Notes under the pieces: model-generated
Databases searched by the model: none
The model's input: only the letters and a program-made list of their open reading frames with translations
What the model was told of the DNA's origin: nothing
Position numbers and translations under genes: made by a program
Part shown: piece after piece, positions 7,601-54,000 of the stretch
Position numbering within the stretch: the first letter of the stretch is position 1
Layout of the letters: every line of letters begins with the position of its first letter
Assembly: GCA_965202585.1 (NCBI GenBank)
Contig: OZ241828.1
Span: forward strand, 56,544,001 to 56,608,000
Reading direction: 5' to 3'
DNA: 64,000 nucleotides
Source: Thalia democratica
Lineage: Eukaryota

Positions 7601-10058
7601 ACACATGGTACAAAATTTATTTGCATTAATAATTGGTGAGCTTAATTTTCAGGCTTAAAACTTAACAGCGGGTCTTAGAATATATGGAATGCATGTAAAC
7701 CTACTGCTATACTGCAAGATATATAAGATGCATATTGTATTTTTGAACAAAGCAAATTAAACCTTAAAAAAAACAAATAATTAAGCTAACTTTGATAACA
7801 AACTAAAAAATTTGTTGTTTCTTTCAAGTTAAAAGTGAAATACACAATAAAGTATATAAAAAAATTTATACAGTATAACTTTAAATTTGGTTCTAAAAAC
7901 AACGATAAATAAAACATACATTCAGTTGTGTAAGACTTTTATAAGGCAAAAGTTTTAGACAAAACCCAGAAATTATTAAAAACTTTATATATCTCTAGGC
8001 CAGTATTACCAAACAATTCAAGTATCTTCTTCTAAATCTTTAAATAATTTATGATCTCTTAAAAAAACATTTAAGTATATTTCTTTAACTTTATATAACA
8101 GTTTTTTGTGAGTTATGAATTTAGCTGAAGATTAACAAAAAAAGTAAATATTAAAAATAATATCAAATGTTCAACCAATTAAACAATACAAAAGATCTGT
8201 GTTTTTAAAGTTTTACTAAAGCTTTTATTTTTTAGATAAAATTTTTGAAATATATTTTCATTTGAACCAGATAGTTTCAAAAAGTTTAAGGACGTATTAC
8301 TTAATGTTAAACATATAATGAAATATTCTTTCCAGCCATTTTTGAACTAATAGGTACGAAAAAAAAACTTTTAAATATACATTTTAATACTTCATATAAT
8401 ATTTTCCTTTTAAATCAAGCTGCAGATAAAAATAATGGTTTTTTAGTAGTTCAAGACAACATACAAAGATAGAATAAATTTAACTATAATACAGATTTTC
8501 AAGGGACTCGAATATTTGCATGATGACAGAAAACTTGTACACGCCGATATCAAACCTTCAAATGTTCTTTTGAATGACAAGCTTCAGGCTAAGATATGCG
8601 ATTTCGGTTTTGCAAAATACTTTGGTTTGTTTGTAATCAGACAACTAATGTATTTTTTTTTCTTATGACTTAGGTAAGTTTACAAAGTTTTAGGCTAAGT
8701 TTAAACAATTTAAAGAGAAAAATACAAACATGAAAATTATTTTAAATAAATTATAATCAAAATTATTTTAAATGAATTAAATTGTTTTGCTATTGATTTG
8801 CCTAAGTTTAAGATTCAAAGTACTAAATCAAAAAGATAAGTTTTAAGCCTTTAAACAAAGTTCAACTAATCAAGCATAACCGTTTAAGCAACCACACTAG
8901 TACTAAAGTTGCATTTCGCTTGAGATCGCGTTGATATGCCAAAAAACATTTACAATAAACCCTCTAAATAACAATATCAGCCATGGTTGTTGTTTCAATT
9001 AATAGAAGTGAATGAATAAAAATTTCTTCGCTAGCTTTTCCAAAACGTTTCACTAAATTTATTACGGAGACAATATTTTCGAATACTTTATTAGTACTTG
9101 TTTTAGGCCAAGCGTACAAATTTCCTTGGGAACGAAACCTTGTTATTCACACTAGAAATGTCGGTACTGACCTGTTTATGCCACCCGAACAGGTATTGTT
9201 TATATTATGAAAAAATCTTAAATTTTTTAGTAAATAAATTGTATAAATACTACTTCATAGTATATATTAACTCCATAAATTCAACTTTAAGATTAAAATT
9301 ACGTTTGCTTTCATTTTTATCATATAAGAACGTTTTAGCAACATTATCAGTATAAAATTTGTTCAAAAAATCAAAAAAAGTCTTAAAGTAAGCATTAGTT
9401 ATTAACCTCAAAAACTAATTAAAGTTATTATTTAGAAAAAAATCCGTACTATTTATTTTTTTTAGGAATAGAAAACAATTTTGCAAGAATCAATTATCCT
9501 AAAGATTTTACAAATGCTCGCTAAATATTGATATGCAAAATAATAATTTTTTCAGAAAACGAGACAGTTCAGCAGTGCGGTCGACGTCTACTCAGGCGCG
9601 TTGACCGCACTTTTGCTGCTGGCGAGAACGAGGGAGTCTGATACCAAAGCAGTTGTTGAAACTGCGAAATACTATAACAGGCTCCCTCTAGTGTTTGCGG
9701 GAAGAGGTCTCAGATACTTGGTAAGTTTCGTTAACTTTTTTTAATATTTTAACTTATGATAAAACAGATGGTTTATTGGTTTTTTAATAGTCTAGCTTTT
9801 ATTTTCAAGTTTCTATTTTCATGTTCTGCTTTTGATTTTTTTTGTATAAACTTTGGTTTCTTTATAAGCTTTATAGTAATCGTTGGCAAATAGTTAAAGT
9901 TTCATTTTTTACAGCAAAATTTACTGTTGATATGTCTTGATGTAGAGGTCAACAAGCGACCTACGGCAACTCAATTCTCTTCTACTTTAATGTTGTACAG
10001 GCAAATTGCGATTGAAGAATTCAGTACTAGAGGCCAAACTAGTAGTAATTTTATTTAA
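1628..10058 (+). CDS. Single-pass transmembrane Ser/Thr kinase with eIF2-alpha-kinase (PERK/PKR/GCN2)-like catalytic domain; 5' end not found
   Basis: Phase-consistent GT-AG exons: 1628-2070, 2392-2427, 2627-2647, 4761-5030, 5252-5334, 6113-6223, 6941-7017, 7371-7480, 8495-8624, 9107-9192, 9556-9720, 9915-10058 (TAA). TM segment [21 protein letters not shown]. Kinase motifs: [36 protein letters not shown], an insert exon, [44 protein letters not shown]. The two small exons at 2.4-2.6 kb are the least certain. Confidence 0.85.
3651..3705 (+). ncRNA. Degenerate minimal type I hammerhead ribozyme-like motif (UUGAAGA core variant) in a kinase intron
   Basis: ttattaaac-TTGAAGA-ggtc...gtcact-GAAAC-ccg-GTT-gtgaataa. 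Homologous to the minus-strand copy at 16951-17005; stems I and II are imperfect. Confidence 0.4.
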
Positions 10059-15217: not shown

Positions 15218-16030
15218 TTACTGAGTGTTCTTGCCACCAAACGGCGCAGGAACTTCCACGACCGTGTACCTCGAATATTCGGTTGTTACGTCACAACTTT
15301 CAACCGACCAATCGCGTGCTTCCGCGTCGTAAACGCCTTTTTCCCGCTGCCGTCCAAGAAAACAACCACTCTGCTTCCCCGAACCGATACGGCACACCAA
15401 TCGAGGTCAACTGCTGCGGGCGGAATTCTCAGAAAAACGAAGCGATCGCAAACGGAGTCAAAGAACTCGCAGGTCGCAGGCCCGCCGCCGAACACAAACA
15501 ACTTGTTTCCGATCGCCGCCAGCTGACAGTTCGTTCTTTGCTCAATCATGCTCGGCATAAAAGCCCACTCGTCGGCCGCGCTGTCGTACGCTTCAACGCT
15601 CGACAAAATCCTCCATTTTGCGATGCCGACCCGATCCTGATATCCGCCGCACACCACAACCTTGCCTCTGAAAACCGCGCTTCCCGCTAGCGTCCTTGCT
15701 TCGCGCAGCCCTCTGACTTCCTCCAACCCGTGCCTTATCGCGTCAAATCTGACGCAGCGATCCTCTGACCATTCTTCAACATCGTAAAACACCAACGCGC
15801 CTATAACGTAGATGTGGCCCATGAAGGCGCACAAATCGAAGTAGGTTGCAACCAGGTCCAGGTCGGGCAGGTCTTGCCACTCTTGGCCACCTACCGGCAA
15901 CTTTTTTACCTGAACGTTTTGCGTGTTAATTACACTGCCACCGAAAACGTAAACGCAGCCGTCCACGCACGCCGAAGCCCAGAACTGCCGGTATTGAGGA
16001 AACTCCAAATCTGCGCATTTCGTTATTTGG
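15218..16030 (-). pseudogene. Kelch-repeat beta-propeller terminal exon with a 1-nt frameshift; upstream exons not found
   Basis: Kelch blades CVYVFGG, HIYVIG, KVVVCGG...VEAYDSAADEWAFMPSM, KLFVFGG. The natural C-terminus (YDAEARDWSVESCDVT...) continues in another frame (ORF 15218-15400) from about 15340. Candidate acceptor cag at 16031-16033; the frame is closed upstream with no ATG. Confidence 0.7.
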
Positions 16031-16494
16031 CTGCTCAACAAATCAAAAAAATTTACAAAAATAAGTCATGCTGAAATAATAAAATTAAAATTATGTATAA
16101 AAATATGCTATAAAAAATTACTCCATTAAAAATACTAACGCTGTTTTTAGAAACTTTTTTTTTGTAAACATACAAGTAAAGCGTCTTGGTCTAAAATAAA
16201 TGCACTTTGTTTATGATATTTATTTGTAAATAAATACATGCACAAAAACAAAAATATACATGAATAATTTTTAATTTAATTTTTTTGAATAAATTTTAAT
16301 AACTTTTTGTAACAATCTAAAAATTGACGAATTTTGAATTAAGTAATTTTATTTAAACTATGCGTACTTTTAAAAACATTTAATTATAAGTTATAATTAC
16401 AAAAAAAAACATACTTAATTTTTAACTACTAATAGTTTTGAAAATAAGATTTTTGAAGTTTGTCTATAATACATATTAAGATCAAATTTACACC

Positions 16495-19215: not shown

Positions 19216-19280
19216 ATTTGTTTTTATTTAATTGTTTAAATGCTATTTTCCATGGCTGTTACTTATCTTTTTAGATTTAT

Positions 19281-19345
19281 TTAAGAACTGACGAGGTCTT
19301 TGACCGAAACTTAGTTTGTAAAAAAAAGTCTTAAAAGAATAAATT
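19281..19345 (+). ncRNA. Hammerhead core with perfect stem II
   Basis: CTGACGA-GGTC-ttt-GACC-GAAAC at about 19288-19310. Stem I pairing (tttaaga/tcttaaa) is offset, so the ribozyme is probably decayed. Confidence 0.45.
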
Positions 19346-19959: not shown

Positions 19960-20860
19960 ATATACCGTCAAGCCTTCGTTGAACTTCATGAGATCGAAGC
20001 CACCTCATTTGTAATTACCCTTTTTACCGGTCTACTGTCAGTTCGTATTATTAATGACCATACTCTACTTTAAAAATGCTTAAAAGCCAAGTGTACCCCA
20101 CGGAGCTCCTGGAAAAAGTGTGACGTACCTGGTTGGATGGGGTAGTTTTTAGATAAGAAGGCCAGAGGTTGCATTTCTCCATCTTTTCCTTCATGTTCTA
20201 ACACTGCGCCGACATGACTGTCCGATGCGTCAGTGAATAGGATCAGAGGTTATGTGTAGTCCTCACAGCTTATTGTTGCTACTTCAATTAATATAGCTAT
20301 CGTGTCATGGTAAGCTTGAGTTCGACTGTCCGAAAGTTTAACAACTTTCCTATTGCTGTTTATAAGTATCCCTGAAATTTCTGTAGGTGGTGTCGTTACT
20401 TTAGCTAAATAAGGAATTATTTGTGGTAATAACTGACCATACCAATAAACCATTTTAACTTTTTTCTTGTTTTTGGTAATGGTAATTTTTTGATAACTTT
20501 GACCTTAGCTTACATAAAATCAATACCGTCAACACTGACTGAGTGTCTTAAAAATTCTATTTTATTTTCGCAAAGGAACATTTAGCTTTGCTTAAAAACA
20601 GTTCATTTTTTGAAAGTGTTTCTAAAACCTGTATCAAATGAGCAATATGGTAGTCCCAGGAGCATGAGAATCTAAGAATGTCGTCTGAGTAGATAAAAGT
20701 AAAGGGCTCTACATGATAAAGTTATACAATCCATAAACTGCTGATAACGTGTTTGTGCGTTTTGCAAGCCGAAAGACCTTACCTTAGGGACAAACACTTC
20801 CAAGGTTAGTGACAATCAGGGCGTCGCGTGAATTTCGGTTGTTTTGTGATTAAAGTATTT
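19960..20860 (-). mobile_element. Ty3/Gypsy LTR-retrotransposon pol remnant (RT + RNase H)
   Basis: Minus-strand translation across stops and frameshifts: SFGLQNAQTRYQQFMD, FIYSDDIL, KCSFAK-IEFLRH, LILFTDASDSHVGAVLEH...PLAFLSK, ELRGVHLAFKHF, IRTDSRP. Confidence 0.85.
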
Positions 20861-23100
20861 AAGTTTGTGTTTGAAATTTGAGTTAGTTAGAGCATTCTGG
20901 TATCTGGTTATTGATTCATTGAAAATTTCTTTGGTTTTTGACAGTCTATTAAGTCTTTTTTCGATCATTTTTGGGAGACTCTTTTTGATAATGGACGGGT
21001 GGTTCGAATATTTGTTAATATCATTGGTGTTGAAAATTTCTTTTTGGTATGGTTTAAATGTATTATTAGTAGTATCTAGATCAGGGGTCGGCAGGCAGTT
21101 GGTGGTCGCGGGCCAAATTTCAAGTTTCCAAAGTCTACGCGGGCCGCAGTTTTAGTTTTAGTGACATTTGAATAGTCTTATGGCTTTATTTTTAGTCACA
21201 CTAGAGAAAAACTTTACTTTTATTAACCTTATTATTTAAAATGACTTTTAGCTATACATAGAATGCATATTCAAATTAATATTCATTAGATTATGATTTA
21301 CATTGACTAATGTACTTTAATAAATATGTACTAATATTGTTAATAAAATATGTACTTCCATAAGCACTTAATAAGTTAAACTTAATACTTTTTTAATTTT
21401 TCTTACGACCTAACTCTCTATAAAAACCTAACATGAAAGACAATTTATGGGTTACTTCTATACATTTGTTATATCATCAACACTTTTTCATATTTCAAAG
21501 AATATTTACTTCGAAAAAAGTTTTTGCGAGTTAAATAATTTACACTCATTAAGAAATTTAGTAATTAGTTAACATAACAAAATTAATACATGTTTGTATT
21601 CCAGAAAGCTAAAACAAATGATTTAACATAATTAATTCTGAAATACTTTAATAAAATATTCTATTAGTAATTAGACTTTTACATGGTTGCCACTAAAAAG
21701 CAAAAATGTCTGAGATGTATCAAACCAGCTTAAATTTATTAAAACTTGAAAAAGCTAATAAATAGTTGTTAATCAAGCTTAAATACCTAGTTAAAATATC
21801 ATCATTATCAAAAAGTACACAAAGTGTAAGAAAACAAGAAAAAAATGCAATTAGTAAACTACACAACAGTCATAAAAACTATTCTGAGAATTGGAAGATT
21901 TCTTAAAAATGTTTGAAATAAAAGCTTCACACACACCTGAGTTTTCAAGCTTTCAAAATAGCTTGTTTGTGTAGCAATTCAGTTAGTATAAAGTTCACTA
22001 CATAAAGAAATAACAAAGGTTATTAACAGTAAATAAACTACATGCCAAAAATACATAAGTCAGCTGGAATGGACAATTGAGTTTGTTAAACAAGTTTAAC
22101 AAAAGTATAAAAATTTATTTAGTCATTAGCAAAGTAGAAATTTTATTTTTATTAAGCATGATAGCAATTCTTTATTTGCAATAAGAATATTGCATTTAAA
22201 AATATTAATTGTAAAATATAAGACGAGCTACAAGAATAAATAAGCGTTAGTTAGGAGTTATTGCGAGAAACAATAAAAAAAATCACCAAAGTCATTTCCG
22301 ACAAAGCACATTATTATCTTCAGTAACTACAGAATAATCAGAAAAAATTGTTAAGGCAAGTAATAAAGTAGAAAAATTTATTACCTAAAATAAGTTATCG
22401 TTTATAATTGAAAACTTTTATAAAGAATTGATGTTGGCGGTAATGAAAAACTTTTGTTTATTTCTTTAATGACAACATGAAGTCGTGTTTAGGAAATGCA
22501 TTAAGGTTATAAAGTCGCATAAATCAAATAAGGACTTTAATCAAACTGTTAACATGAGAGCACTGATAGAAAAACTATTGCTCATCTGAGAATTTTTATT
22601 AGAGATGTTTTTACTAACTTTGACAATTTGGTAGAATTTCTTTGTTTAGTTCCAATGCGAAGCACAACAATCGTTGAAAATTTTCAAGTAAAAGTGCAAT
22701 GTACCAATACGGAGTTTTTGGAAGTACAATTCTTTCTTTTATTTTTAGTATAAAGTTTAATTAAAGTTTTAAAAAATGTCTTAAAACATTTATCAATATT
22801 AAAAAATACTGTTAAGCTACTATAATAAATTTTTAAATAAAAAAACATTTATTTGGTAATTTTTTTTGAGTTAAATCGAAATTTCATTACTTTAAATGTA
22901 AAAACTGTTTGAAACTATAGGTTTTTCAAAAATTCTCAAATTCAAGCTTTTTTCTAGAATTTTTAACCGTAAATTCACAAATTCAAAGCTTTTCCGGGAT
23001 TCAACTTTTTTGGCAACACTGATTGTTCATTCTTTAATGTACACAATAATTTAAATAATATTTTGAATTATATCAGCTGCAAGACTTAAAATTTAACATA

Positions 23101-28940: not shown

Positions 28941-30530
28941 ATGGCGTCGGACGTATCAAAAATCGCTTTTTGTTTCTTCCTCGTCCTCGTACAAGCAAAC
29001 TGCCAGGTGAGGCTTGCAGAAGTAGTGAACTCCAAGGAAGAGTATCCTTACCACGCCTACATCGAAACCGTTTACCGGGACGCAGATAGGAACTTGTATT
29101 TGAGGGGCGGCGGTTGCGGAGGGGTGATAGTGAGCCGGCACTATGTGCTGACTGCAGCCCACTGTGTGGCAGGGACAATGGAGACAGAAGGACGGCGGAT
29201 GATTCCGCGCCTGAGCGCCATACTTTACTTTGGAATGCTCAAACGCGACATTGTCGACGGTTTCAAACAGCGAATAATCGTAAATCTCGACGAAGACTTT
29301 ATGTTGCACCACCAAGCGCAAACCCATTACAACTCCGACATCGCGTTGATTCACACCGATAAGATCGACATCGACAACGTCGAGATAGCCAGGGCCGTGC
29401 TGGGCAACCCATTGAGCTTGAGTCAGAACGGATGGGAATGCGATGTTAGCGGGTGGGGACGTTCCACTCTGGAAGAAATAATAGCGGGGAAAAACTCGCC
29501 AGTGCTGAAGTCAGCCAGAAACACTATCAGAAACACTAACCAGCCTTTAAACTTGGAAATTCTCGTCAAAGGCGAGTCTTCAATTCACCGGATGTGGCCG
29601 CTGGTGCACGACAACGCAACTAAAAACTACTCGTACGACCTCTCCGGGGAAAAGGCGCAGACGACGATCGCCCCCTCCCCCATGCCCGGAGATTCAGGCG
29701 GCCCGCTGTCGTGCTACCCCCGTTCCAGGTCATTCAATTACGGCCAGCACAAGTCGGTGTACGGGGTTCTTAAGGGGGGCCCGGCGGGGGTCGGCGGCGG
29801 CCACGGCGAGCCGGCAAAGTACACCAGGATCGCCTATCACCACGAATGGATCGCCGACCGCATGAGAGGGCACGAAGGGGAGAGAGCTTTGCTGGACGGC
29901 AGGGACGCTGTCATGGGCCAGTTCCCTTACCAGGCCGCCGTTTTCGACGAGGGCTACGACGTTTTCAAGTGCTCGGGTGCCGTCGTAAGTAAATTTTGGG
30001 TTCTGTCGGGCGCTTCGTGCTTCGAGAAGAACGATGTTGTTTTTGCGGGGGAAGTGGACCACGCAACTTTAAAAAACCCTAAACGCCAGATGCTTATTTG
30101 CGATGAACCATCTCTTACGAGAAACGACCTCCAGCTGTGCAGGGTTGCAAATGGGTTCAAGTTCCACAAGTTTTTAAAAAAAATCGACTTGGAGCCGGAA
30201 GATTTCGTTCCGGTCGAATGCCAGTTTGCCAGCTGGGACTTGAACGCTGATGACAACACTTATTACAAGTACTTGACGTGGAAGAAGGCAAATCTCAACA
30301 GAAACGATCAAAACGGTGGACACTTGGACGTCGAAGAGGTCAATTTGTTTCGTGTCGGTCGAAATGACCGGACGAGCGCGGGAGCGGCGCTGGTGTGCAG
30401 CGGCGCGGGCGGAGGCAGGTACTTGATCGGCATGAGCGAACGAACTGGGGTGGATGCGAGGTTCGTCGACATCAAAGAATACGCTGAGTGGATTAATCAA
30501 CATACTCGACTTACAGCCGAGTTGGAATGA
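28941..30530 (+). CDS. Secreted tandem S1 (chymotrypsin-fold) protease, 529 aa, intronless; N-terminal domain has an intact triad, C-terminal domain is inactive
   Basis: Signal peptide MASDVSKIAFCFFLVLVQANC. Domain 1 has LTAAHC, SDIAL, VSGWG, GDSGGP and YTRI..HHEWI. Domain 2 has GQFPYQA, CSGAVVS..WVLSGASC (His lost), TSAGAALVC (Ser motif lost) and YAEWI. AATAAA-like signal at about 30613. Confidence 0.93.
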   Translation: MASDVSKIAFCFFLVLVQANCQVRLAEVVNSKEEYPYHAYIETVYRDADRNLYLRGGGCGGVIVSRHYVLTAAHCVAGTMETEGRRMIPRLSAILYFGMLKRDIVDGFKQRIIVNLDEDFMLHHQAQTHYNSDIALIHTDKIDIDNVEIARAVLGNPLSLSQNGWECDVSGWGRSTLEEIIAGKNSPVLKSARNTIRNTNQPLNLEILVKGESSIHRMWPLVHDNATKNYSYDLSGEKAQTTIAPSPMPGDSGGPLSCYPRSRSFNYGQHKSVYGVLKGGPAGVGGGHGEPAKYTRIAYHHEWIADRMRGHEGERALLDGRDAVMGQFPYQAAVFDEGYDVFKCSGAVVSKFWVLSGASCFEKNDVVFAGEVDHATLKNPKRQMLICDEPSLTRNDLQLCRVANGFKFHKFLKKIDLEPEDFVPVECQFASWDLNADDNTYYKYLTWKKANLNRNDQNGGHLDVEEVNLFRVGRNDRTSAGAALVCSGAGGGRYLIGMSERTGVDARFVDIKEYAEWINQHTRLTAELE

Positions 30531-42900: not shown

Positions 42901-45900
42901 GAGAAAATGCTCTTAAAAAATTTGTCTAAGAAAACTTTAAAAGCTTATTTATGACTAATAACGATTTTATAGTTAAAGTAGCAAACTAAGCCGATACCTT
43001 TTGATGAGAAAGGCGGTTATCAGTATCAAAAATACCTAGTTAAATATAGATGATTAATATAAATTGAAAGCAAAACTTTTTTTATAAATGCTGACAGGTC
43101 CTATTTAAACAGTCGATTTCAACTAGAATAGTTCTATTGTTCTGTATTCTTAAACACATGCATTAAACCTTTACATGTTTTGTGTTTTTATAATCAGTTA
43201 AAATATTTAACCAGACAATGGCATTGAGGCGCCTGCTTTAATCTTTTAATTTTTTCGAATTTTTCAAACTATCGGTACAAAGTAACTATTGTTTTCACCG
43301 ATTGTTTACATTACCCGTTTCGCTAATATGGACATTAGCTCGTTTGATAAAGTTCAATTTGGTAGCCAAAGTTTCATGAACTATTTAATTAAGATTAACA
43401 TCTTGCTTCTTTTTGCTGTCTTTTCGTTTTTGTTTAACACCGTACTTTTTTAGCTTTTTCTAAAAGTTTAAAGGTTTAAAACGAAATGACGCTTGTGCTT
43501 ACGTGACTAAAAATTTAAGAACATTTTAACGTTTACATTAAAAAAAAAACTTATCTTATAATGAAAAACACTAAAAGTTGTGCTATATATGTTTTAAAAA
43601 GTGCCTGAAACTGTTTAATTATGGCAAAAAAAATTTAGAAGTTTTTATTGTCCATGGTGTAATGTTCATTCTTGATTTTATTATTCTGTTTATTAAGGTT
43701 ATAATTTTTTATTGGGCTTAAGTAAATAAAGACTTTATTTTATATGCTTATCAGCTAAGTCTCATACTACAATCACAAAAAAAAAAATTAATGACGCTTC
43801 ATATTAAAAATTGAATATCTGCACGACCGTGTTAATAAAACTCATCGTAACACCAACTTACTATATCTACCAGCAACAAAATTTTAAACTGCATCTAACC
43901 TTACCCTGTGGTGTTTTACTTTTTAAAAACAACTTTTATTTCTATTGTCTACAGCACAGCTTGTATTAAAAAGCGGTTTTAATACCTATCATCAAGACAA
44001 AGTGCTGAGAAAACGTTTTAACACCTCCCATTTCGAAGAGACAATTGTAAACATTTTATTGTCAAGTCTGTTTACGGCAACTTTTCTTTTGAGTGAGTAA
44101 CGCAAACGGGTTTTAATCCAATTCAAAATTGTAATTATTCTCACTTACTTGCTCGCACTTGCGATAATTATACCAGTCTGACCCGATGAACTGAGATTTA
44201 ACTGTAAATCGGATAAATTTTTTGGTTTTATTTCGAAGAGTTTAAACATTTTACGATCTTTTTATGTACATTTTTAATAAAGGACCACCCAGCTTTCAAA
44301 GTAACTTATATCTGTAACATGAATATTTTCAAATAGCTACATATAAAAACAATGCTATAATTGGAAAACTGCTTTTATATTAAGTTTCATGTGCTTTTGA
44401 GTTATGGTTTGAAAAAAAAATCATTGTAAGCTAATTATTTTAATACGAATACTTAAAAATATAGATGAATGTGCGTGTATATTTTTACTTAAATGATATT
44501 TGTTCTTGCGGTCAAAACCATATAAACGATTAATCAAAACAACAAAGTAGAACTAACAATCATTTTTATATATTACTAACAATACTTCAAACGAACATTA
44601 TCTACGTTTAAAATTTTGATGATAAATTACCGAAAACATCAGTGTAATTTCGTACCAGCTTGCGAAGATCTTAGTCACAAATTCCATAACTAATTTGACC
44701 AACTTTGTTTTTATAGTAGTTTTGAAATGGGTAAAGCTGCTAAGTTTTTTTTTTATACGAGCGGCCGATTTACAAACATTTTTTCTTAGTTTTTCAACTG
44801 AGTATTACGGGGTATTGTGATACTTGAAACTTTGTTTGATATATATCTAAATCATAATTGAATTTTAATGGTGTCTAAACATTTGATAGTATAGACTTAC
44901 AATGGTAATGTTTTATTTTCTTTACAAATTAGAGTATATGTTTAAAATTGCTTAAAGTGTAACAAAAAGTTTTGTTAATGCTTAATTATTTTTTTGTTCA
45001 AAAAATAAATTTTAAAAACTAGCTTTCTCATTAAAAAAAAACTAAAAGTACCTACGGGTTGAAAATTAAAACTTTTAATATTTTAACAAAAAACATCGGC
45101 GAAAGTCAGCAGAGCAGAAGCCTGGACTTTCGTTTGCCGTGAGACAAGCTCAATACAATAGGGTTGATCACGCCAATTCGACCATCAGACCACAAGTTTC
45201 GGTAGACTGAGACCGGTTTCGTCCTTATTAGGACTCATCAGTCAGTCACAACCGAAAAACTTGTAGTCGTCAATCTACAAACGGTTTATGTTGTTTTAAA
45301 CGTTGCACGGCAAATGACAATGCTGACGTCACTGATCATTGCTAGCAAATAGTTGATTCATGTGAAAGCATGATAAACCGTTTGTAGATTGACGACTACA
45401 AGTTTTTCGGTTGTGACTGACTGATGAGTCCTAATAAGGACGAAACCGGTCTCAGTCTACCGAAACTTGTGGTCTGATGGTCGAATTGGCGTGATCAACC
45501 CTGTTGTTTTAATATTTTATATATAAAAAACTAAAATTATCAACAATAGTGTTTCTGAGTTACAAATTTAATTATTTGGATATTTTTCATGCTAATAAAA
45601 AGTATTTAGATATTTAACATGTTAATTATGAAACATTTTAAGGTATAAAATGATTCCTTACGAATTTTTTAGCATAATAAGACAAATGTTTGACATAAAA
45701 AAATACTTATGTAGTTAAAACATTATTTGTAATTTATATATATTTTATCTAAGTTAACGAGACAAAACTTTTTTTTACAAAAGGTTTATTCTGAAATAAT
45801 GATACATAAAAACTAAAAAAATTCTAATTAATTATACTGGATTATCTTGTAACAACTCTTTTTATTGATTACAATAGTTTTAAGTAATTTTATTAATTAA

Positions 45901-48900
45901 GTTAGAATAACAAATTTTCAGTATTTAAATAAAAGCAAACTTTTAATCGCTTTAGAAAATAAAATTTACTTATTTATTTCGTAACACCTACAGAAAAATC
46001 TTTTGAAATTAAAATCACGTTTGGTATTCTTTAGACTTTTAGAGAACATACTTTAAAGTAACGCGTAGTAAATATTTCATAACATTATATACATTCAAAG
46101 GTAACAACTAATTAAAACACAGGTCGCACGTGTGTAAATACGAATCAACCGACTTCTACCACTTTCCAGTGAAGTTGGTTGCCTACCTGAAACCTTCGGT
46201 CAAGTGCTGGCAGAACAAAATAAAAAACAAGTTCGTCTGCTTGAAGAGGTTGGAAAATTTCACAACTTTATAAAATTACAGTTATTAAGTTAAAAACTAT
46301 GCAAAAACTGATAAAACATTGGTAAAAATTTTGTTAAATTTAGAAAGGTATGTTGCACAAGTTTAAATTTTATATAATGCTATATAATTATAGTTAACAA
46401 TCTATAATAAATAGATGTCTTAATAGCACAAAATTACAGTTATTAACTTCTGAGATTTTTAATGATGATGCAATTTTTCACAGCTACGGAAACGGAAGGA
46501 ACATTCCGACCGGCAGGATCGCTTGGAGCTGCTGTGAGAAATTTGTTTTCAGTAAAGCGAGAGGCTACTGCGTCAGGAAACAAAAGAATAAAGGTTTCAA
46601 AACAAGAAGCTTTATTTCTTGTATATTTATATTAATAGGCGATTGAAACTTTGTTACAAAAATTTTAAATAGTTGAGTTACTAAATGGTGATTAATTTTG
46701 TATTGAGTTTTTTGTTTTTAATCATTGACTGTCAGTTGTTTTTACCAAACTTACATTCTATTAATTGTATAGTCATGTTTGATAAAGTTGAGTTCTACTG
46801 TTTTTTCGAAGGTTAATTACATTAATAATATAATAAGATTTACAGAGATTTAAAACTTAAAAATAAAGTAATTATCGAATGTACTTATAGGGAATTTTAA
46901 GTTTTTTTTTTTTGTTTTGAACCCAACAAAACAACTAACTTTATTTTATAAAACACAAGAAATTATTTTTTTTGTTAATTTAAGTAAATTAGATAAATTT
47001 TACATGCTTATTTATACTTTAGATTAAATACCATCTCTATAATCAGCTGAAAATGTCAATAATATTCCTCTGATCAAAAATAAATTGCAAAACTGTCAAT
47101 TTTGTTTTTCACATGTTTCTATGCAGATATACATAACAACTAGTGGCATTATAAATAAAAGGTGTCATAAATGCACGGAGCGTCACTTTTGAATAAACCA
47201 AAACTTTTTAATTAAAAATCCTATTTTAAAATGAATAAGCAAACTGTTTTTTACTTATTGGAAAACAGTGTTTTAAAATAAAAAAGTGACGTTTCGTGCA
47301 TTTGTGACTCGTTCCCTTTCAAATATAGTTATTAGAGAAGTTTAATTTAAAAAACAAATTCTTGTTTAACTTAAAAATAAATAAAAAATAGTAAAGAAGG
47401 CCAGTCTCGCCTTCAACCAGCCGATACAAGTTTCAACTATCGACGAGAGGGGACTGTTCCAAAAGAGCAAGGAAAAAAAGAAGCGCAAGAAGAAGAAGAA
47501 AGGAAAGAAAAGCAGAAGAAAAAACAAGAAGAGGCGAAAGAAGTCGAGCAGGAAGAGGAGCGAACAAGTTGAGAGGAAGAGGAGCGAACAAGTTGAGAGG
47601 AAAATATTCACAAGCTTCAGAGCAGAACACACCAACGGTAATTGTTTTCAAAACATTTTCGTTGAAAATTTTTATCTAACTTTGCTATTTTTTAATTTTT
47701 AAATATCTTTAAACAACTTGCTAGCAGAGTTTCAAGTCAATCAAGCATAGAATTTAAAAAAATAAATAAGACAAACAATCTAAGGCTGATTTTACTGAAT
47801 TTCTTTTATCTAATGCGAATTTTAAATACTTACTTTGCCATACATCTACTAAAGCATCAGTTAACATAATCAGTAGAAAATAAAATGCTACAGATGATTT
47901 TTTGGTTAGTCAAACTAAAATACATTTTTTTGCAAATTTTTTCTAACAGAAAACGCAGAATATTTGAAAAACATAGCTGGAAACTCAATTATAGAAGATA
48001 AACTGGTTGGGTTCGACTCTTTTGAAAATAATAACGTTTACAAAGTGAGTTTTACGATATGATATTTTAAAACCATTAACTAGCAAGATAAGATGAAAGC
48101 TCAAAAATATTTTAGAACAATCTAAAGATTGGATTTTTTACTAATAAATTTCAGCTTTAATATAAATATTAAAGGCCACATATTTACAACATGTTGAATA
48201 AAAGTTTTTAAAAATACTTGTTGCTAATACAAATTAGCTTTTATAACACAAAAAAGGAAATGTCGCTAATTTTACTATATTTTTTAGAGCGTTTTTAGTT
48301 AGCAAAGTACATAAACTAGTCATTATATTTATTATATGCTCGAAAAGTCTTCTACAAAAATAAGTAGACGTGAGCCAATTCAAACTATCTCAAAAAAAAA
48401 AAAACTTAAGGCACAGTCAGGAATGACAATAAGACTGAACAGCTTCCATAACGATGTTTGGACGGCAAACTGCCAGAAAATAACCCAACCCGACTTCTGG
48501 ACGTCTGACACCGCCGTCGTCCACAAAACATCAGGAATCCTGTCCAATGTTCAGGATTCCGTTGCTAGTTACCTGAGCATGAGAAGCAGCTCATTTTATA
48601 TTTTTCTAAAAGGTTCTTATTGAATTTATATTAAAATTTAAGTAGTCGTACCCTTGAGTACTTTGAATAAAGTATTAACTTGCGTACTTAAAAGAAAGTG
48701 TTTACCTAAAAACTACGTTTTTAAGAGATAAGTTACTGCATATTAAAATTAATCAATTATTGTAAAAGAATATTAAGTATTTTTTACACACTTTAAAGCG
48801 CTTTCCAAAGTTGAAGGCTTGATTAGCTTGCTGGAGTCAAATGAACACCCCGTGACCCTTTTTGCGCCGACAAACTCGGCATTCGAAAACTATTCGTTTG

Positions 48901-51900
48901 ACGAAGAATCTGTAGAATGTTTGAATGAAGTAATCGAAAGTCACATTGTTGACGGAGTTTTTTGCTCAGTTGCAGCCGGTTTGTTTAAAATTTAAATAAA
49001 TAGCAATTGTTATAATTTGTAGAGTATTTTAATTTATAAACATGAAACGCTTGGGTTTCCCTATATTAATTTCAACACTTCAACTATTAAATAACCCCTT
49101 AAAAGTCAAAATTTATATGATATTTGTCTTAAATGATTTTATATTTTCAAAAGACGATAAATTGTAAAAAACTAACTTATAAGGCGGATAAATTTTAAAG
49201 CGGTTAACAATTATATATGCTATTACTAAATACTTATTTACTATCTACTATTTAGTGTAGTAAAACTTAACAATAAAAAAAGTTATTAAAGTTTTTATCA
49301 TAACATTCTACTTAAAAAAAACTTTATTACAAGTTTTGATCACTCTTACTTGTTTAACAATCTATGTAGTTTTTTGAAAACAATCTAAATTTATGACTTT
49401 TCTCAAAAATAATTTTATCATTTTGATAAATGATATTCATCATAAAGTTTCAAAAATAAGATAAAAAATATTGAATTCTGTTTTAAAATAGGTATAAATC
49501 TTGTCACAATCAATGGTCATTTATTAAAAACACGAGTTGACGACTTCACAATTCATATCAACCAATCAAAACTGATAAATCGTGATGTCATGGCAACAAA
49601 CGGAGTTATTCATAGTGTTGACAGTTTGATAACAAAAGGTAACTCATTTAACATTTTTTGTATGGATAATTTTTTTTTCATTTTGTAAAGTTTGTTTAAA
49701 CCTTTCTAGAACTATACTTAGAAAGTATATAAAAGATTTGTTTTTATAACAAGAACATATTTGTAATTAGTAGACAAAACTTCTCCTACTAAAATACTTA
49801 CTAAAAACTGTTAAATATTTTACTAAGTTGTGTTTGTTTGTATTTAGGCAAAAAAATTACCGTACTTGACAAGATTAATAGTGCTTACTTCAATTTTAAA
49901 CGTAATATACTGTTTACTAATAAGTTCTAATATACTAAATCAATTATGTTACTAGCGTCAAAAATATTTGAAGTAAATAGCTTAAAAAAAAATCTGTAAA
50001 ACTTTTTATACTTTAAAAAATATTAAAGTTTTATGAACAACATTATTTTTTTAATCTTTAAAATTAATTGAATCACAATAACAGTGCGGACAATTGCGGA
50101 CGTTTTAAGAGAAGAAAAAGGATTCAGTGACTTCTATGATTATTTTCAATCTTCAGGGAAACTGGATTCTCTCAGCAAAATGAGGAATATAACTTTGTTC
50201 GCTGTGAGAAATCGTGCTTTTCAGGTTTTTAATTACCAATTGTTATATAAAAAAGGCTAAAAAAAAAGCTACGATATACTTTTCCACTACATTCATTAAC
50301 AGTACAAAGAAGAATTTATATTAAATGTTTAAATAAGTTGTTTAAAAATTATTCATTCAAATTTTTCAAAAGTAATGAAAATAGTTTCAATACTTTTTAG
50401 AGTAATAAGAATACCTATGAAGTTGCTGCAATGTTTTTCCATTAACAAAAAACAAGCAAAATAAAAAACATAATGAGTTTTTTGAAAAAGAATATTATAA
50501 AACGAATAAGATGTTTTTATTATGATGTGTTTTTTTTATTACTGACTACTTTTCATTGGACAAATTATATTTAAATATAAATAGACTAATAGTAAATTAA
50601 AATATTTTCAGAGTAACAAGAAATTTGATGACGTCAACCAGCTCAAATATCACGTGACAAATTTTGTCGACCTCGCCGATCTCCGTCACCCTCCAGTGAC
50701 GAAAGTTGTGACGTCACGAGAAGGGGAACATCCCGTTTACGCGACTTCTTACAACAGCAGGGGTAGCGGGTTTGTCGTCGCGGTTCAGTGCACACGCGTT
50801 GCCAGGCAACAAACTTCCGGTTCATGCGCCGGAAACCTGATAGAAGTCGAACAGGTTGCAAGATCGTAGTTTGTATTTTTTTCGTTTGAGAGACATTTAA
50901 ATGAAAATTTTTTATTTGTTTTTTTTTATATTGGTTTCGGTTTAGCTATACTACAATATTAATAAAAATACTATTAATGAACTACATATCGTTCAGCTTT
51001 GGAATTTATTTATATTTTTGATTTAATTTTCAAAAAAAATGTAGGTAAATATCCCTTTATCTAATTTTAAGCATTATTTTTACAGCTGTTTAAAGTTCCA
51101 AAGCGTAATTTATTAGAAGTCATCGAAGATTCAAAGAACGGAAACTTCTCAATGCTTCTTCAAATTATCAGGCTGCACAAACTAGAATACGTTAGTTAAA
51201 GTTTATATAACTTTTTAATTTATATTAAAGTTAAATTTATATTCCTAAAAAACTTGATACTATTAGTAGTACAATTTTATTTTGAGTTTATATATTTACA
51301 ACTATTTCACGTTTATACGATGATAACAAGAAAATAAAGTTATAACTATAAGCTTCTTGTAACTCTATACAAGTTCACGATAGTAGTTGGAAAACAAAAA
51401 ACTTATTACTATAAGTAGTATATAAAACAACTTAAAAGTGTTTTTTAAACAGCTGCTGATGAGAAATGAACCAGTCACCTTTTTAGCTCCAACCAACAAC
51501 CAGTTCAAACAGCTGAGTAGGAAAGTGTGGAACAAGCACTTTGCTAAGAAGGAGTCCGCAAGAAGAATAATCACATTCCACCTGCTACCAGGTATGTACT
51601 ACAATTTATATTATATTCAATTTAAAGGTTTACTAAGAAAACTTTTCATCTTATTGTGTTTTGAGCTGTGTAATTAAGTAATTTAGTTAATACAGTGTAA
51701 ATTTTGTGTTAAAAAGGTATATTTTAGTTCACGGAATTTATTACTTCGGTTTATTAGCAGTAACATATATCAATTAAATAAAGTAACCTACCGAAAATAA
51801 AATGAGATCTTTTTTTGTTTGCAAACAAACACATGCAGTTTTAAAATCGTAAAAACTGAAAAAGAAAACTTAAAGGCATTAACATGTGATAATTATAAAC

Positions 51901-52145
51901 CAGGTTACTACTGTTTCGATGAGCTGATGCAGCGGTCGCACAAAATTAAAACTTTGAACGGTCAGCACGTGACCGCGTGCCCCAAAACCCCCAACTACGT
52001 CATGTTCGGCAGGAGGAGAAACGCGCTGAGGGTGCGCACCGTCACGCCTGACTTGCTGGCGCGTAACGGCATCGTGCACGCCGTAGACAACATCCTCGTG
52101 CCCAAGTACTATGACGTCACAAAGTACCCGAACAAGAAGGGATAG
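39993..52145 (+). CDS. TGFBI/periostin-like secreted fasciclin protein (signal peptide, EMI-like Cys domain, polybasic insert, four FAS1 repeats), 787 aa
   Basis: Phase-consistent exons: 39993-40381, 46123-46248, 46484-46593, 47392-47637, 47950-48044, 48411-48612, 48799-48978, 49492-49638, 50085-50224, 50612-50854, 51086-51190, 51453-51591, 51904-52145 (2364 nt total). Motifs HVC...WSCC...YC, TLFAPTNSAF, DVMATNGVIHSVD, ITLFAVRNRAF, TFLAPTNNQF, DLLARNGIVHAVDNIL. Confidence 0.9.
45192..45264 (-). ncRNA. Type I hammerhead ribozyme (minus-strand copy)
   Basis: Exact reverse complement of 45398-45470. Confidence 0.88.
45398..45470 (+). ncRNA. Type I hammerhead ribozyme (plus-strand copy)
   Basis: Stem I GACUGA/UCAGUC, extended by UCGGU/ACCGA and ACAAGUU/AACUUGU; core CUGAUGA; stem II GUCC-UAAUAA-GGAC; GAAAC; palindromic short stem III ACCGGU; GUC triplet with predicted cleavage after 45451. 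Confidence 0.9.
47161..47316. mobile_element. Small MITE of the same family as 56778, in fasciclin intron 3
   Basis: gtcataaatgcacggagcgtcactttt is mirrored by aaaagtgacgtttcgtgcatttgtgac; the right end gttccc matches the gggaac terminus at 56778. Confidence 0.65.
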
Positions 52146-53596
52146 ACGATGTTCGGTCTTGGTGCGAGATTTAGAGTTCTTATCAAAAAAGTATTGCTGA
52201 CTACAGGACAGTGATGCCTGAGTAGAAATTTGAAAATCGGATTGAAAGTAAAAAAAACAATAGAAATGATATGTGCTAGGAATGTTGAGTTTTTAACAAA
52301 GAACTTATGTAATAATAAAACTGCGGGGATAAATTTTAAGATTTTTTTATAACTATAACCAGCAATTTCATGAGATTTTTTTATTTAGGTTTCAGTAGAT
52401 TTTTAATTGAAATAAAACCAAAAAGAGTTTTTAAATAATAAATATTATACAAACTTGTTTTTGAGAAGGTTGAAACATTTTTTTTATGAGATTATTTATA
52501 TTTATTATCAAAAATGTTTGTTAAATTTAGTCATATCTCAAAAATTCTTTTACTTTTTGTTCTTATTTATATACTTTTGGTCAAAATAACTAATAGTCAA
52601 GAAATAACAGCAAAACCAACTTCTATTTTGTCTTATAAGTTTATTTTTTAGTTCTACCAGTTATTTTAAATCAATTTTTTTTTTGAGAAAACTAAAGAAA
52701 GTACTAAGACATTAATAAAAAGTCATCAAAAAATAATTTCCTTCTTTAATAAACTAGTTGCATTCTGTTACATTTATTATTTTTACAATATTACTTTGTT
52801 ATATGAATAATTTTTAAATGAAAGTCTATATTATTTTGCTGGCAAAATAAACTTATACAAACTGCATAAAAACAGAGTAATTTTTATACAATTTATACAA
52901 TTTTCAAAGTCTACTCAAACGTATGTTTTTTTTAATAAAGAATAAAAACAGCAAACCGTTTATTGTACCTCAATTTTCAAATGAAAAGTTAATTTAAAAT
53001 CACTTAAGATAGAACATATTTTTATAATTTAAATGCTTGTAGTTGTTAAAACTAATCATTTAACAATGCTTTTCAAACATTTACGTTTTTTACATTATGT
53101 TATTAAGCAAAAAAATCATCAGGGTTTCAATTTAATTGTAATTTTAAATGAATAAAGTTTACCAAAAACAAAAATTTTTCAACTTTTATAGTAGCTCAAC
53201 CAACTTTCATAAAGAAAATAAATAAAAACGTAAAATTACTAAAGTATTTTTTTTTTGTAATCTGAAATATTAGATAAATTATTTTATTTTTTTGATTTTA
53301 TCTGCTCTAAAGAAAACTTTATGATTTATGAGCAATATTAAATTTCTTTTTTTATTACACTAGTTGCATTTTATTCTACTGTTTTTTAAATTTATTTGTA
53401 TAGTAGTTAGTCGTAATTTTTTTCATTGAAGCTCTTTGATATTTTGCTGGCAAAATAAATTACTGCAAATTTTACAAAACCTTACTTGTGCTTTTAGTTT
53501 TGATAAATTAAGAAGTTTATCAGCGTGTAAAATAATATTATTAGAGAACTAAAAAAAAATATTACTGATGATAATGTAAATAGGAATGTCATAATA

Positions 53597-54000
53597 AGTT
53601 GCCGTGCAATAGTAAATACATAGTTTACTTGATAAAACAGCTGGTTTTGAATACGATCAGTGAAAACATCGGCGTAAGTCTATCAGGTCAAAGCCTGGAC
53701 CTGGAGTTACCTGTACCATGAGACAAACTAAAGTTAAAACACGTAAGTCACACGTAAGTCCAGGCTTTGACCTGAGAGACTTACGTCGATGTTATCATTG
53801 ATCGTATTCAAAACCAGCTGTTTTATCAAGTAAACTATGTATTAACTATTGCACGGCAACTAGAAAACCCTGACATTACTGACCATGCCAGCAAACGGTT
53901 GCTACATGGTAAAATGATAAACTGACTGACGAGTATCAATAAGAAGGTTTCAAACTTCCGAAGGTTTGTGGTCTGATGGTCGAAGTTGTATGATCATATC
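53597..54000 (+). mobile_element. Older relative of the 45.1-kb hammerhead element, also with an internal inversion
   Basis: 104-bp inverted arms at 53597-53700 and 53758-53861. Shares aaaacatcggcg..aagcctggac..tgagacaa, ttgcacggcaa..tgataaac and gtggtctgatggtcgaa with 45086-45506. Decayed core tgaCTGACGAgt at 53926-53932, with GAAA lost. Confidence 0.75.

Follow-up and report, generated by a model that had tools for sequence, protein, structure and literature searches.

The 64,000-nucleotide (nt) window of the Thalia democratica genome analysed here (assembly GCA_965202585.1, contig OZ241828.1, positions 56,544,001 to 56,608,000) carries at 45 kb an insertion built from a 336-nt repeat with a type I hammerhead ribozyme. 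The repeat recurs in tandem arrays and dispersed copies across the genome. It is most probably a non-autonomous, non-coding animal retrozyme without long terminal repeats (a non-LTR retrozyme), spread by Penelope-type target-primed reverse transcription from a template longer than one unit. The anatomy of the element, its arrays, its target-site duplications (TSDs) and the positions of its ends were observed directly, as were resident Penelope-like elements (PLEs) that leave the same scars.

The 336-nt unit and its copy at 45 kb

As the reference monomer we took the natural unit of a tandem array (locus L031, 6280-6615), rotated to begin right after the cleavage site. The monomer is 336 nt long and has a GC content of 43.5%, compared to ~27% in the surrounding DNA. 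It is non-coding, with a longest stop-free stretch of 61 codons when read as a trimer, and its predicted fold has an energy of -107 kcal/mol (z -4.3 against shuffled sequences). The string TTGCTTAGTGG at monomer positions ~160-170 (L031, 6630-6640) agrees at 10 of 11 positions with the A-box consensus of RNA polymerase III promoters; a properly spaced B box was not seen near it.

A search of the 801-Mb genome with segments B and H of the monomer (H being the hammerhead-bearing tail) gave more than 2060 first-look candidates. Those that were scored are 97-100% identical and lie on all large contigs, and several runs of candidates are spaced 335-337 bp apart. Tandem Repeats Finder resolved an array with a period of 336 nt, 7.0 copies and 100% matches on contig C5 (12.36 Mb), in addition to an array of the same period with 3.1 copies and 99% matches on contig C10 (3.33 Mb). 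A preliminary description of the window had proposed a hammerhead-bearing unit of ~330-350 nt, with its segments in the closed order H-A-C-B-H. Both proposals agree with the genome, in which the 336-nt unit forms head-to-tail arrays as well as dispersed, TSD-flanked insertions. Because perfect tandem arrays of this unit exist, the closed order is not a chance reading of permuted fragments.

In the window, positions 45085-45508 hold two partial copies of the monomer, which stand head to head and form a compact foldback. The arms of its inverted repeat (45152-45297 and 45365-45510) are 146 nt each and 97% complementary, with a spacer of 67 nt. Every segment previously placed here, H and A on the minus strand and B and H on the plus strand, was recovered by blastn against the natural monomer. 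The features of this copy are as follows.

45073-45085, no strand: left TSD copy, TTTTAATATTTTA, 13 bp; the identical 13-mer stands on either side of the head-to-head structure, and its last base is shared with the element end (microhomology)
45085-45297, minus strand: minus arm, monomer 249-336 followed by 1-130 (H then A); 94-95% identity to the natural monomer by blastn
45085-45157, minus strand: tail segment, monomer ~58-130, with a stable hairpin (stem CGAAAGUC/GACUUUCG), present at this end only; from the end positions, the monomer fold and the alignment
45189-45259, minus strand: type I hammerhead, Rfam HH9 at 38.8 bits, E 3e-8 locally; the CUGAUGA...GAAA core and the GUC site are intact, with predicted cleavage at 45211/45210
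45292-45508, plus strand: plus arm, monomer 176-336 followed by 1-57 (B then H), whose outer 3' end is the "short" end; 99.4% and 96.5% identity by blastn
45403-45473, plus strand: type I hammerhead, Rfam HH9 at 38.8 bits; helix III palindrome ACCGGU at 45444-45450, with predicted cleavage at 45451/45452
45507-45519, no strand: right TSD copy, 13 bp, the identical 13-mer; it overlaps the final 2 nt of the plus arm

The hammerhead of each arm matches the Rfam family Hammerhead_HH9 (RF02275, clan CL00010), with an E-value of 2.5e-6 over the whole window. It shares with this family the type I topology, the conserved core with its GUC triplet, a helix II of 4 bp closed by a 6-nt loop, and the extension of helix I. 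The Rfam structure line shows helices I and II paired and helix I open, both RNA ends exiting there. Different from the model, the helix III hairpin loop is missing (a 5-nt gap), and HH9 proper is a conserved single-copy motif of amniotes rather than a repeat. The predicted fold of positions 45398-45470 has an energy of -27.8 kcal/mol (z -4.7). Among the genomic copies, 113 that were fetched are identical across the entire hammerhead motif, and most variants sit in loop 2.

Helix III consists of the palindrome ACCGGU, which within one molecule leaves a single A-U pair round a CCGG tetraloop, so that no closed helix III hairpin forms. A palindromic helix III is a known, dimer-dependent variant of the hammerheads of amphibian retrozymes and PLEs (PMC7229834, PMC4209133). 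Such hammerheads cleave well only when two ribozymes pair, for example in multimeric transcripts, and poorly in a lone monomer or circle (PMC7229834, PMC4209133). By analogy, efficient self-cleavage of the 336-nt element would therefore need the pairing of two ribozymes. When two hammerhead segments were cofolded, alternative pairings prevailed and the result was uninformative.

Two further hammerhead-like sequences were seen apart from this family. Near position 9841 of locus L034 (minus strand) lies another hammerhead variant, from another repeat family, whose helix II is similar, whose helix I differs and whose helix III is again a palindrome, CGAUCG. At 19280-19345 of the window (plus strand), a hammerhead-like string combines CUGACGA, a 4-bp helix II, GAAAC and a downstream GUC with a poorly paired helix I. 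It has no Rfam match at E<=0.05 on the whole window and is probably non-functional.

Insertion architecture and the resident Penelope-like elements

The architecture of the family was read from ~18 independent insertions, taken from the ~20 best-matching genomic loci and hence a biased sample. In most of them, two arms meet head to head at an inner junction that falls at arbitrary monomer positions, like a 5' truncation. By contrast to this scatter, the outer ends lie in just two narrow zones, at monomer 52-63 (~57) and 130-136 (~133), each right after TTGTT. Twelve of the 13 two-armed insertions have one end of each kind; if ends were independent, 12 out of 12 would be expected with p~2e-4. 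The 76 nt between the two sites hold a stable hairpin, which is thus present at one end only. A TSD of 12-16 bp encloses the whole structure in 13 of the 18 insertions and overlaps the element ends by 2-4 nt.

The copy at 45 kb conforms exactly to this pattern, with ends at ~130 and 57 and one 13-bp TSD round both arms. Its minus arm finishes at the "long" outer (3') end at ~130, which bears the ~76-nt tail, in line with the 12 of 13 insertions above. As it has one predicted cleavage site per strand, no unit-length RNA, either monomer or circle, would come from it, and the copy is dead on arrival as a monomer source. A read-through RNA would instead fold as a long hairpin of 146 bp.

A 2.9-kb insertion on contig C5 comprises ~9 monomers, 1.5 units on one arm and 7.6 on the other, that are 100% identical and lie within a single 13-bp TSD. 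Arrays therefore arise during insertion and not by later amplification. Sequence differences amount to 0.45% within an insertion and to 2.06% between insertions. The junction from monomer position 336 to position 1 is intact in every insertion examined, which argues against a cleaved linear monomer as the template and leaves a circle or a multimer that had escaped cleavage. In ~5 of 17 insertions, the same strand carries two or more cleavage sites.

The hallmarks of PLE insertions are partial tandems, an adjacent inverted and 5'-truncated copy, and an extension at one end only (PMC8557442). The retrozyme insertions bear the same signature: units in partial tandem, a 5'-truncated copy in inverted orientation and a tail on one side, with the TSD round the whole. 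The genome itself holds 568 GIY-YIG candidates with open frames of up to 964 aa, among which intact resident PLEs, encoding a reverse transcriptase (RT) and a GIY-YIG endonuclease (EN), span 779-964 aa. Three families were sampled from these 568 candidates: family A (964 aa, with RVT_1 and GIY-YIG domains), family B (918 aa, locus L048) and family C (821 aa). Families A and B occur as head-to-head and tandem insertions with TSDs of 12-13 bp and one-sided tails of 69-130 nt. Enzymes that leave such scars are therefore present and young in this genome.

Two loci of family A deserve description in their own right. At L047, 3337-10000 (genome G000, contig C7, 24.117-24.124 Mb), full-length PLEs form a perfect head-to-tail array with a 3580-bp period and 100% identity. 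At L055, 2444-7316, both arms of a family A insertion end at the same unit position and the flanks form an inverted repeat of at least 40 bp; either the element inserted into a palindrome, or the structure is an artefact of the assembly.

The preliminary description had also linked the element to Penelope-type machinery and had pointed to a Penelope RT remnant in the window. The link is supported by the insertion architecture, since the head-to-head arms, the ~76-nt tail and the 12-16-bp TSDs are as in the resident PLEs. No convincing remnant came to light: tblastn of the window with six resident PLE proteins gave nothing at E<=1e-3 and noise at E<=5. A 111-codon open stretch at 20819-21151 (minus strand), 24 kb away from the insertion, matches the RT-EN linker of the resident PLE proteins weakly by profile (8.9 bits, E 0.025), and Pfam gave nothing there. 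This stretch may be what had been called the remnant.

Transposition model and competing explanations

Putting these features together, we infer self-cleavage, circularization, the order of priming and the supply of the enzyme by a PLE in the following scheme. Master copies with at least two cleavage sites on the same strand would be transcribed as arrays, and paired hammerheads would cut unit-length RNA out of the multimer. A cellular RNA ligase would circularize this RNA, and the circle would be stabilized by the poor activity of its lone hammerhead. The RT/EN of a PLE would then use a template longer than one unit, either circular or a multimer left uncleaved. At a break staggered by 12-16 bp, the two 3'-OH ends would each prime cDNA through 2-4-nt microhomology, one at ~57 and the other at ~133, where two U-rich UUGUU sites bracket the stable hairpin. 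The two cDNAs would extend inward over variable lengths before being joined, which would leave head-to-head arms, a 76-nt one-sided tail, a variable inner junction and a single TSD. The copy at 45 kb would be one such insertion event. For the PLE transposition cycle, an in vitro system does not yet exist (PMC8557442).

RNA data consist of assembled contigs, from which ends, strand and circularity are not readable. In a marine metatranscriptome, contigs cover the full monomer, some without differences, and one crosses from position 336 to position 1; the family is likely expressed. The family-specific part of the monomer was also found in marine and seawater metagenomes of at least seven studies (public runs X12-X27), which indicates that the host is a widespread planktonic or marine animal.

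Several observations weigh against the retrozyme interpretation as a whole or against parts of it. Five of the 18 insertions have no clear TSD. The score of 38.8 bits is below the HH9 gathering score of 52; at gathering thresholds Rfam reports no hammerhead in the whole window, and the hits surface at E-value thresholds only. By nucleotide diversity, the hammerhead does not stand out as more conserved than the rest of the monomer; the differences gather at a small number of polymorphic sites. In the copy at 45 kb, the two arms differ at 4.8% of common sites, which is above the family average and may reflect two templates or a greater age. The metatranscriptome evidence comes from contigs only, and DNA runs of the same sample also hold the element, so that DNA carry-over may contribute to it. 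Finally, the sampled PLE loci contain no hammerhead, as judged by Rfam at E<=0.01 over 70 kb, by Rfam at E<=10 on the non-coding ends of families A and B, and by two motif scans. The monomer has no similarity to families A, B and C either (blastn with word size 7 against 24 PLE loci). None of the three sampled families thus stands out as the partner PLE. A blastn search for an autonomous partner had a sole match, at L048, 1230-1340, which is a decayed retrozyme copy close to a PLE.

The alternative closest to our proposal keeps the same retroelement and gives circular RNA no part in its transposition: the template would be a long uncleaved multimer transcribed from an array in the genome, and any circles would be by-products that lead no further. 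We regard this course of events as possible, although the less likely one. Uncleaved multimers explain the cleavage junction in every insertion equally well, source arrays of up to 7-8 units exist, and the palindromic helix III predicts slow cleavage (PMC4209133). On the other hand, animal retrozymes of like size and hammerhead type are ~50% circles in axolotl tissues (PMC7229834), an analogy that would favour circles here, and rolling reverse transcription on a circle would explain homogeneous multi-unit insertions without equally long homogeneous sources. Far less probable is a derivation of the copies as solo pseudo-LTRs or 3' ends of an autonomous PLE with an open reading frame (ORF), in which the permutation would be a pseudo-LTR arrangement only. 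Hammerheads do occur in the pseudo-LTRs of PLEs, which are found in tandem as well as inverted arrangements (PMC4209133, PMC8557442), and the PLEs compared are three families among the 568 candidates. Yet none of the 18 independent insertions adjoins an ORF, the unit repeats with a 336-nt period in up to seven perfect copies, and this non-coding monomer resembles none of the three families by sensitive blastn. The preliminary description had named copies that are always 3' ends of ORF-bearing Penelope elements, without tandem monomers, as the outcome that would speak against it; by the same findings, this outcome does not hold here.

Satellite DNA spread at the DNA level, by unequal exchange or by reintegrating extrachromosomal circles, with the hammerhead as a passenger, would account for the tandem arrays and the very high copy number. 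It is the least probable of the explanations considered, since the copies are dispersed on all large contigs, each with its own 12-16-bp TSD, and combine fixed outer ends with random inner 5' truncations and head-to-head arms. Dispersed, TSD-flanked copies with fixed ends and inner truncations argue for target-primed reverse transcription and not for recombination.

Within the Penelope-type scheme, the pairing of ends at 57 and 133 in 12 of 13 insertions might be the trace of two coupled priming events, carried out by a Penelope RT/EN complex that recognizes the hairpin by its structure. This is a speculative and rather doubtful reading. If true, retrozymes would be moved in trans by young PLEs that have neither a hammerhead nor common sequence with them, and the hammerhead would act in the RNA processing of the parasite itself, with no role in the transposition cycle of the PLE. 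The element would in that case also provide a compact 336-nt substrate for dissecting the mechanism of PLE integration.

Decayed relative, neighbouring genes and place among known retrozymes

A second, diverged copy lies at 53.6 kb of the window.

53597-53738, minus strand: inverted arm of the old diverged relative (A, C and the start of B); inverted repeat of 104 nt, 95% complementary, and 73% blastn identity to monomer 56-148
53749-53996, plus strand: plus arm of the old relative (A-C-B-H), which ends near monomer ~48-57; 70-73% blastn identity to the monomer, with the hammerhead inactivated

The order A-C-B-H that had been assigned to this relative is indeed present on the plus strand. The copy is likewise head to head, with 53597-53700 facing 53758-53861, and its inverted arm was absent from the preliminary description. 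So were the deletions in its hammerhead, which have removed part of helix II, the GAAA, the cleavage site and also the helix I extension; Rfam finds no hammerhead match in this copy even at E<=10. Its closest other match in the genome is only 77% identical. The copy is an ancient, decayed relative whose ribozyme is dead. As a sign of covariation in the tail hairpin, a single compensatory change from A-U to U-A was seen in the plus arm of this copy, the other arm having lost the stem, and this was too thin to count. A 14-nt block just 3' of the ribozyme, CUUGUGGUCUGAUG (monomer 15-28), is invariant among the young copies and also in three old relatives that have decayed elsewhere; it lies at 45466-45479 and 53965-53978 of the window, at ~1250 of L048 and at ~900 of L033.

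Between the two retrozyme copies lie 8 kb of host DNA, which belong to no element and contain exons of a fasciclin-domain gene. Four exon-like ORFs at 48819-52145 (plus strand) match Pfam Fasciclin with E-values of 1e-7 to 1e-3, which indicates a multi-exon FAS1-repeat gene. The insertion at 45 kb precedes the first detected exons of this gene by ~3 kb on the upstream side, and the old relative lies ~1.5 kb downstream of the last. Elsewhere in the window, 28941-30530 (plus strand) is an intronless ORF of 529 aa with a trypsin domain (E 1.6e-30), and 15286-16041 (minus strand) is an ORF of 251 aa with Kelch repeats (E 1.9e-17).

The assignment to animal non-LTR retrozymes, already suggested in the preliminary description, fits on every feature tested. 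The element forms head-to-tail repeats with a type I hammerhead and a unit within 170-400 bp; it has no coding capacity, LTR, primer-binding site (PBS) or polypurine tract (PPT), its GC content is below 45-50%, and its TSDs exceed 4 bp. The ORF with PLE-type RT and GIY-YIG that defines an autonomous PLE was found neither within nor beside the copies. Its closest counterparts among animal non-LTR retrozymes (Cervera & de la Pena 2020, PMC7229834) are the amphibian 330-350-nt repeats, newt satellite 2 and axolotl Rtz_331. These share with it the unit size, the type I hammerhead, a one-bp helix III with a palindromic tetraloop and the tandem repeats, as well as the lack of an ORF, LTR, PBS and PPT, a GC content below 45% and TSDs of more than 4 bp. 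The two differ in host lineage, here a marine animal, and in the RNA circles, which are documented in axolotl and predicted for the 336-nt element. For the 336-nt element the insertion architecture, with its head-to-head arms, its paired ends at 57 and 133 and its arrays inside one TSD, was resolved copy by copy, and the available text of PMC7229834 and of the PLE papers offered no such description.

PLEs with pseudo-LTRs (Craig et al. 2021, PMC8557442; Cervera & de la Pena 2014, PMC4209133) have in common with the element the partial tandems, the inverted 5'-truncated copy, the one-end extension and TSDs of ~12-16 bp. Compared to them, it lacks an RT/GIY-YIG ORF, its tail measures ~76 nt rather than the 30-40 bp cited, and it carries a hammerhead that the sampled resident PLEs lack. 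That retrozymes derive from PLEs has been argued in a preprint (bioRxiv 10.64898/2026.07.22.740005). The LTR retrozymes of plants (Cervera et al. 2016, PMC4918200) are likewise non-autonomous, hammerhead-delimited units presumed to move via circular RNA. They differ in their type III hammerheads, LTRs with PBS and PPT, 4-bp TSDs, Gypsy-type mobilization, units of 600-1000 nt and high GC content.

Tunicates are not mentioned in the available text of the retrozyme papers, including PMC7229834 and PMC4209133, and a full-text search combining hammerhead ribozyme, tunicate and retrotransposon returned papers that by title concern other topics only. With the present family, retrozymes gain a very young, high-copy member from a widespread marine animal, whose lineage is absent from the available text of the retrozyme papers searched. 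Some added interest attaches to the paired ends at 57 and 133, the arrays within one duplication and the hammerhead-less sampled resident PLEs. For the window itself the consequence is modest, a dead-on-arrival, hairpin-forming insertion and an old decayed relative. For the family, the insertions provide copy-by-copy structural evidence for Penelope-type integration of small ribozyme elements, with multi-unit arrays laid down in a single event and paired ends. The 336-nt unit with its two sharply defined priming sites would be a practical tool for work on PLEs, and the family predicts an abundant small circular RNA in its host.

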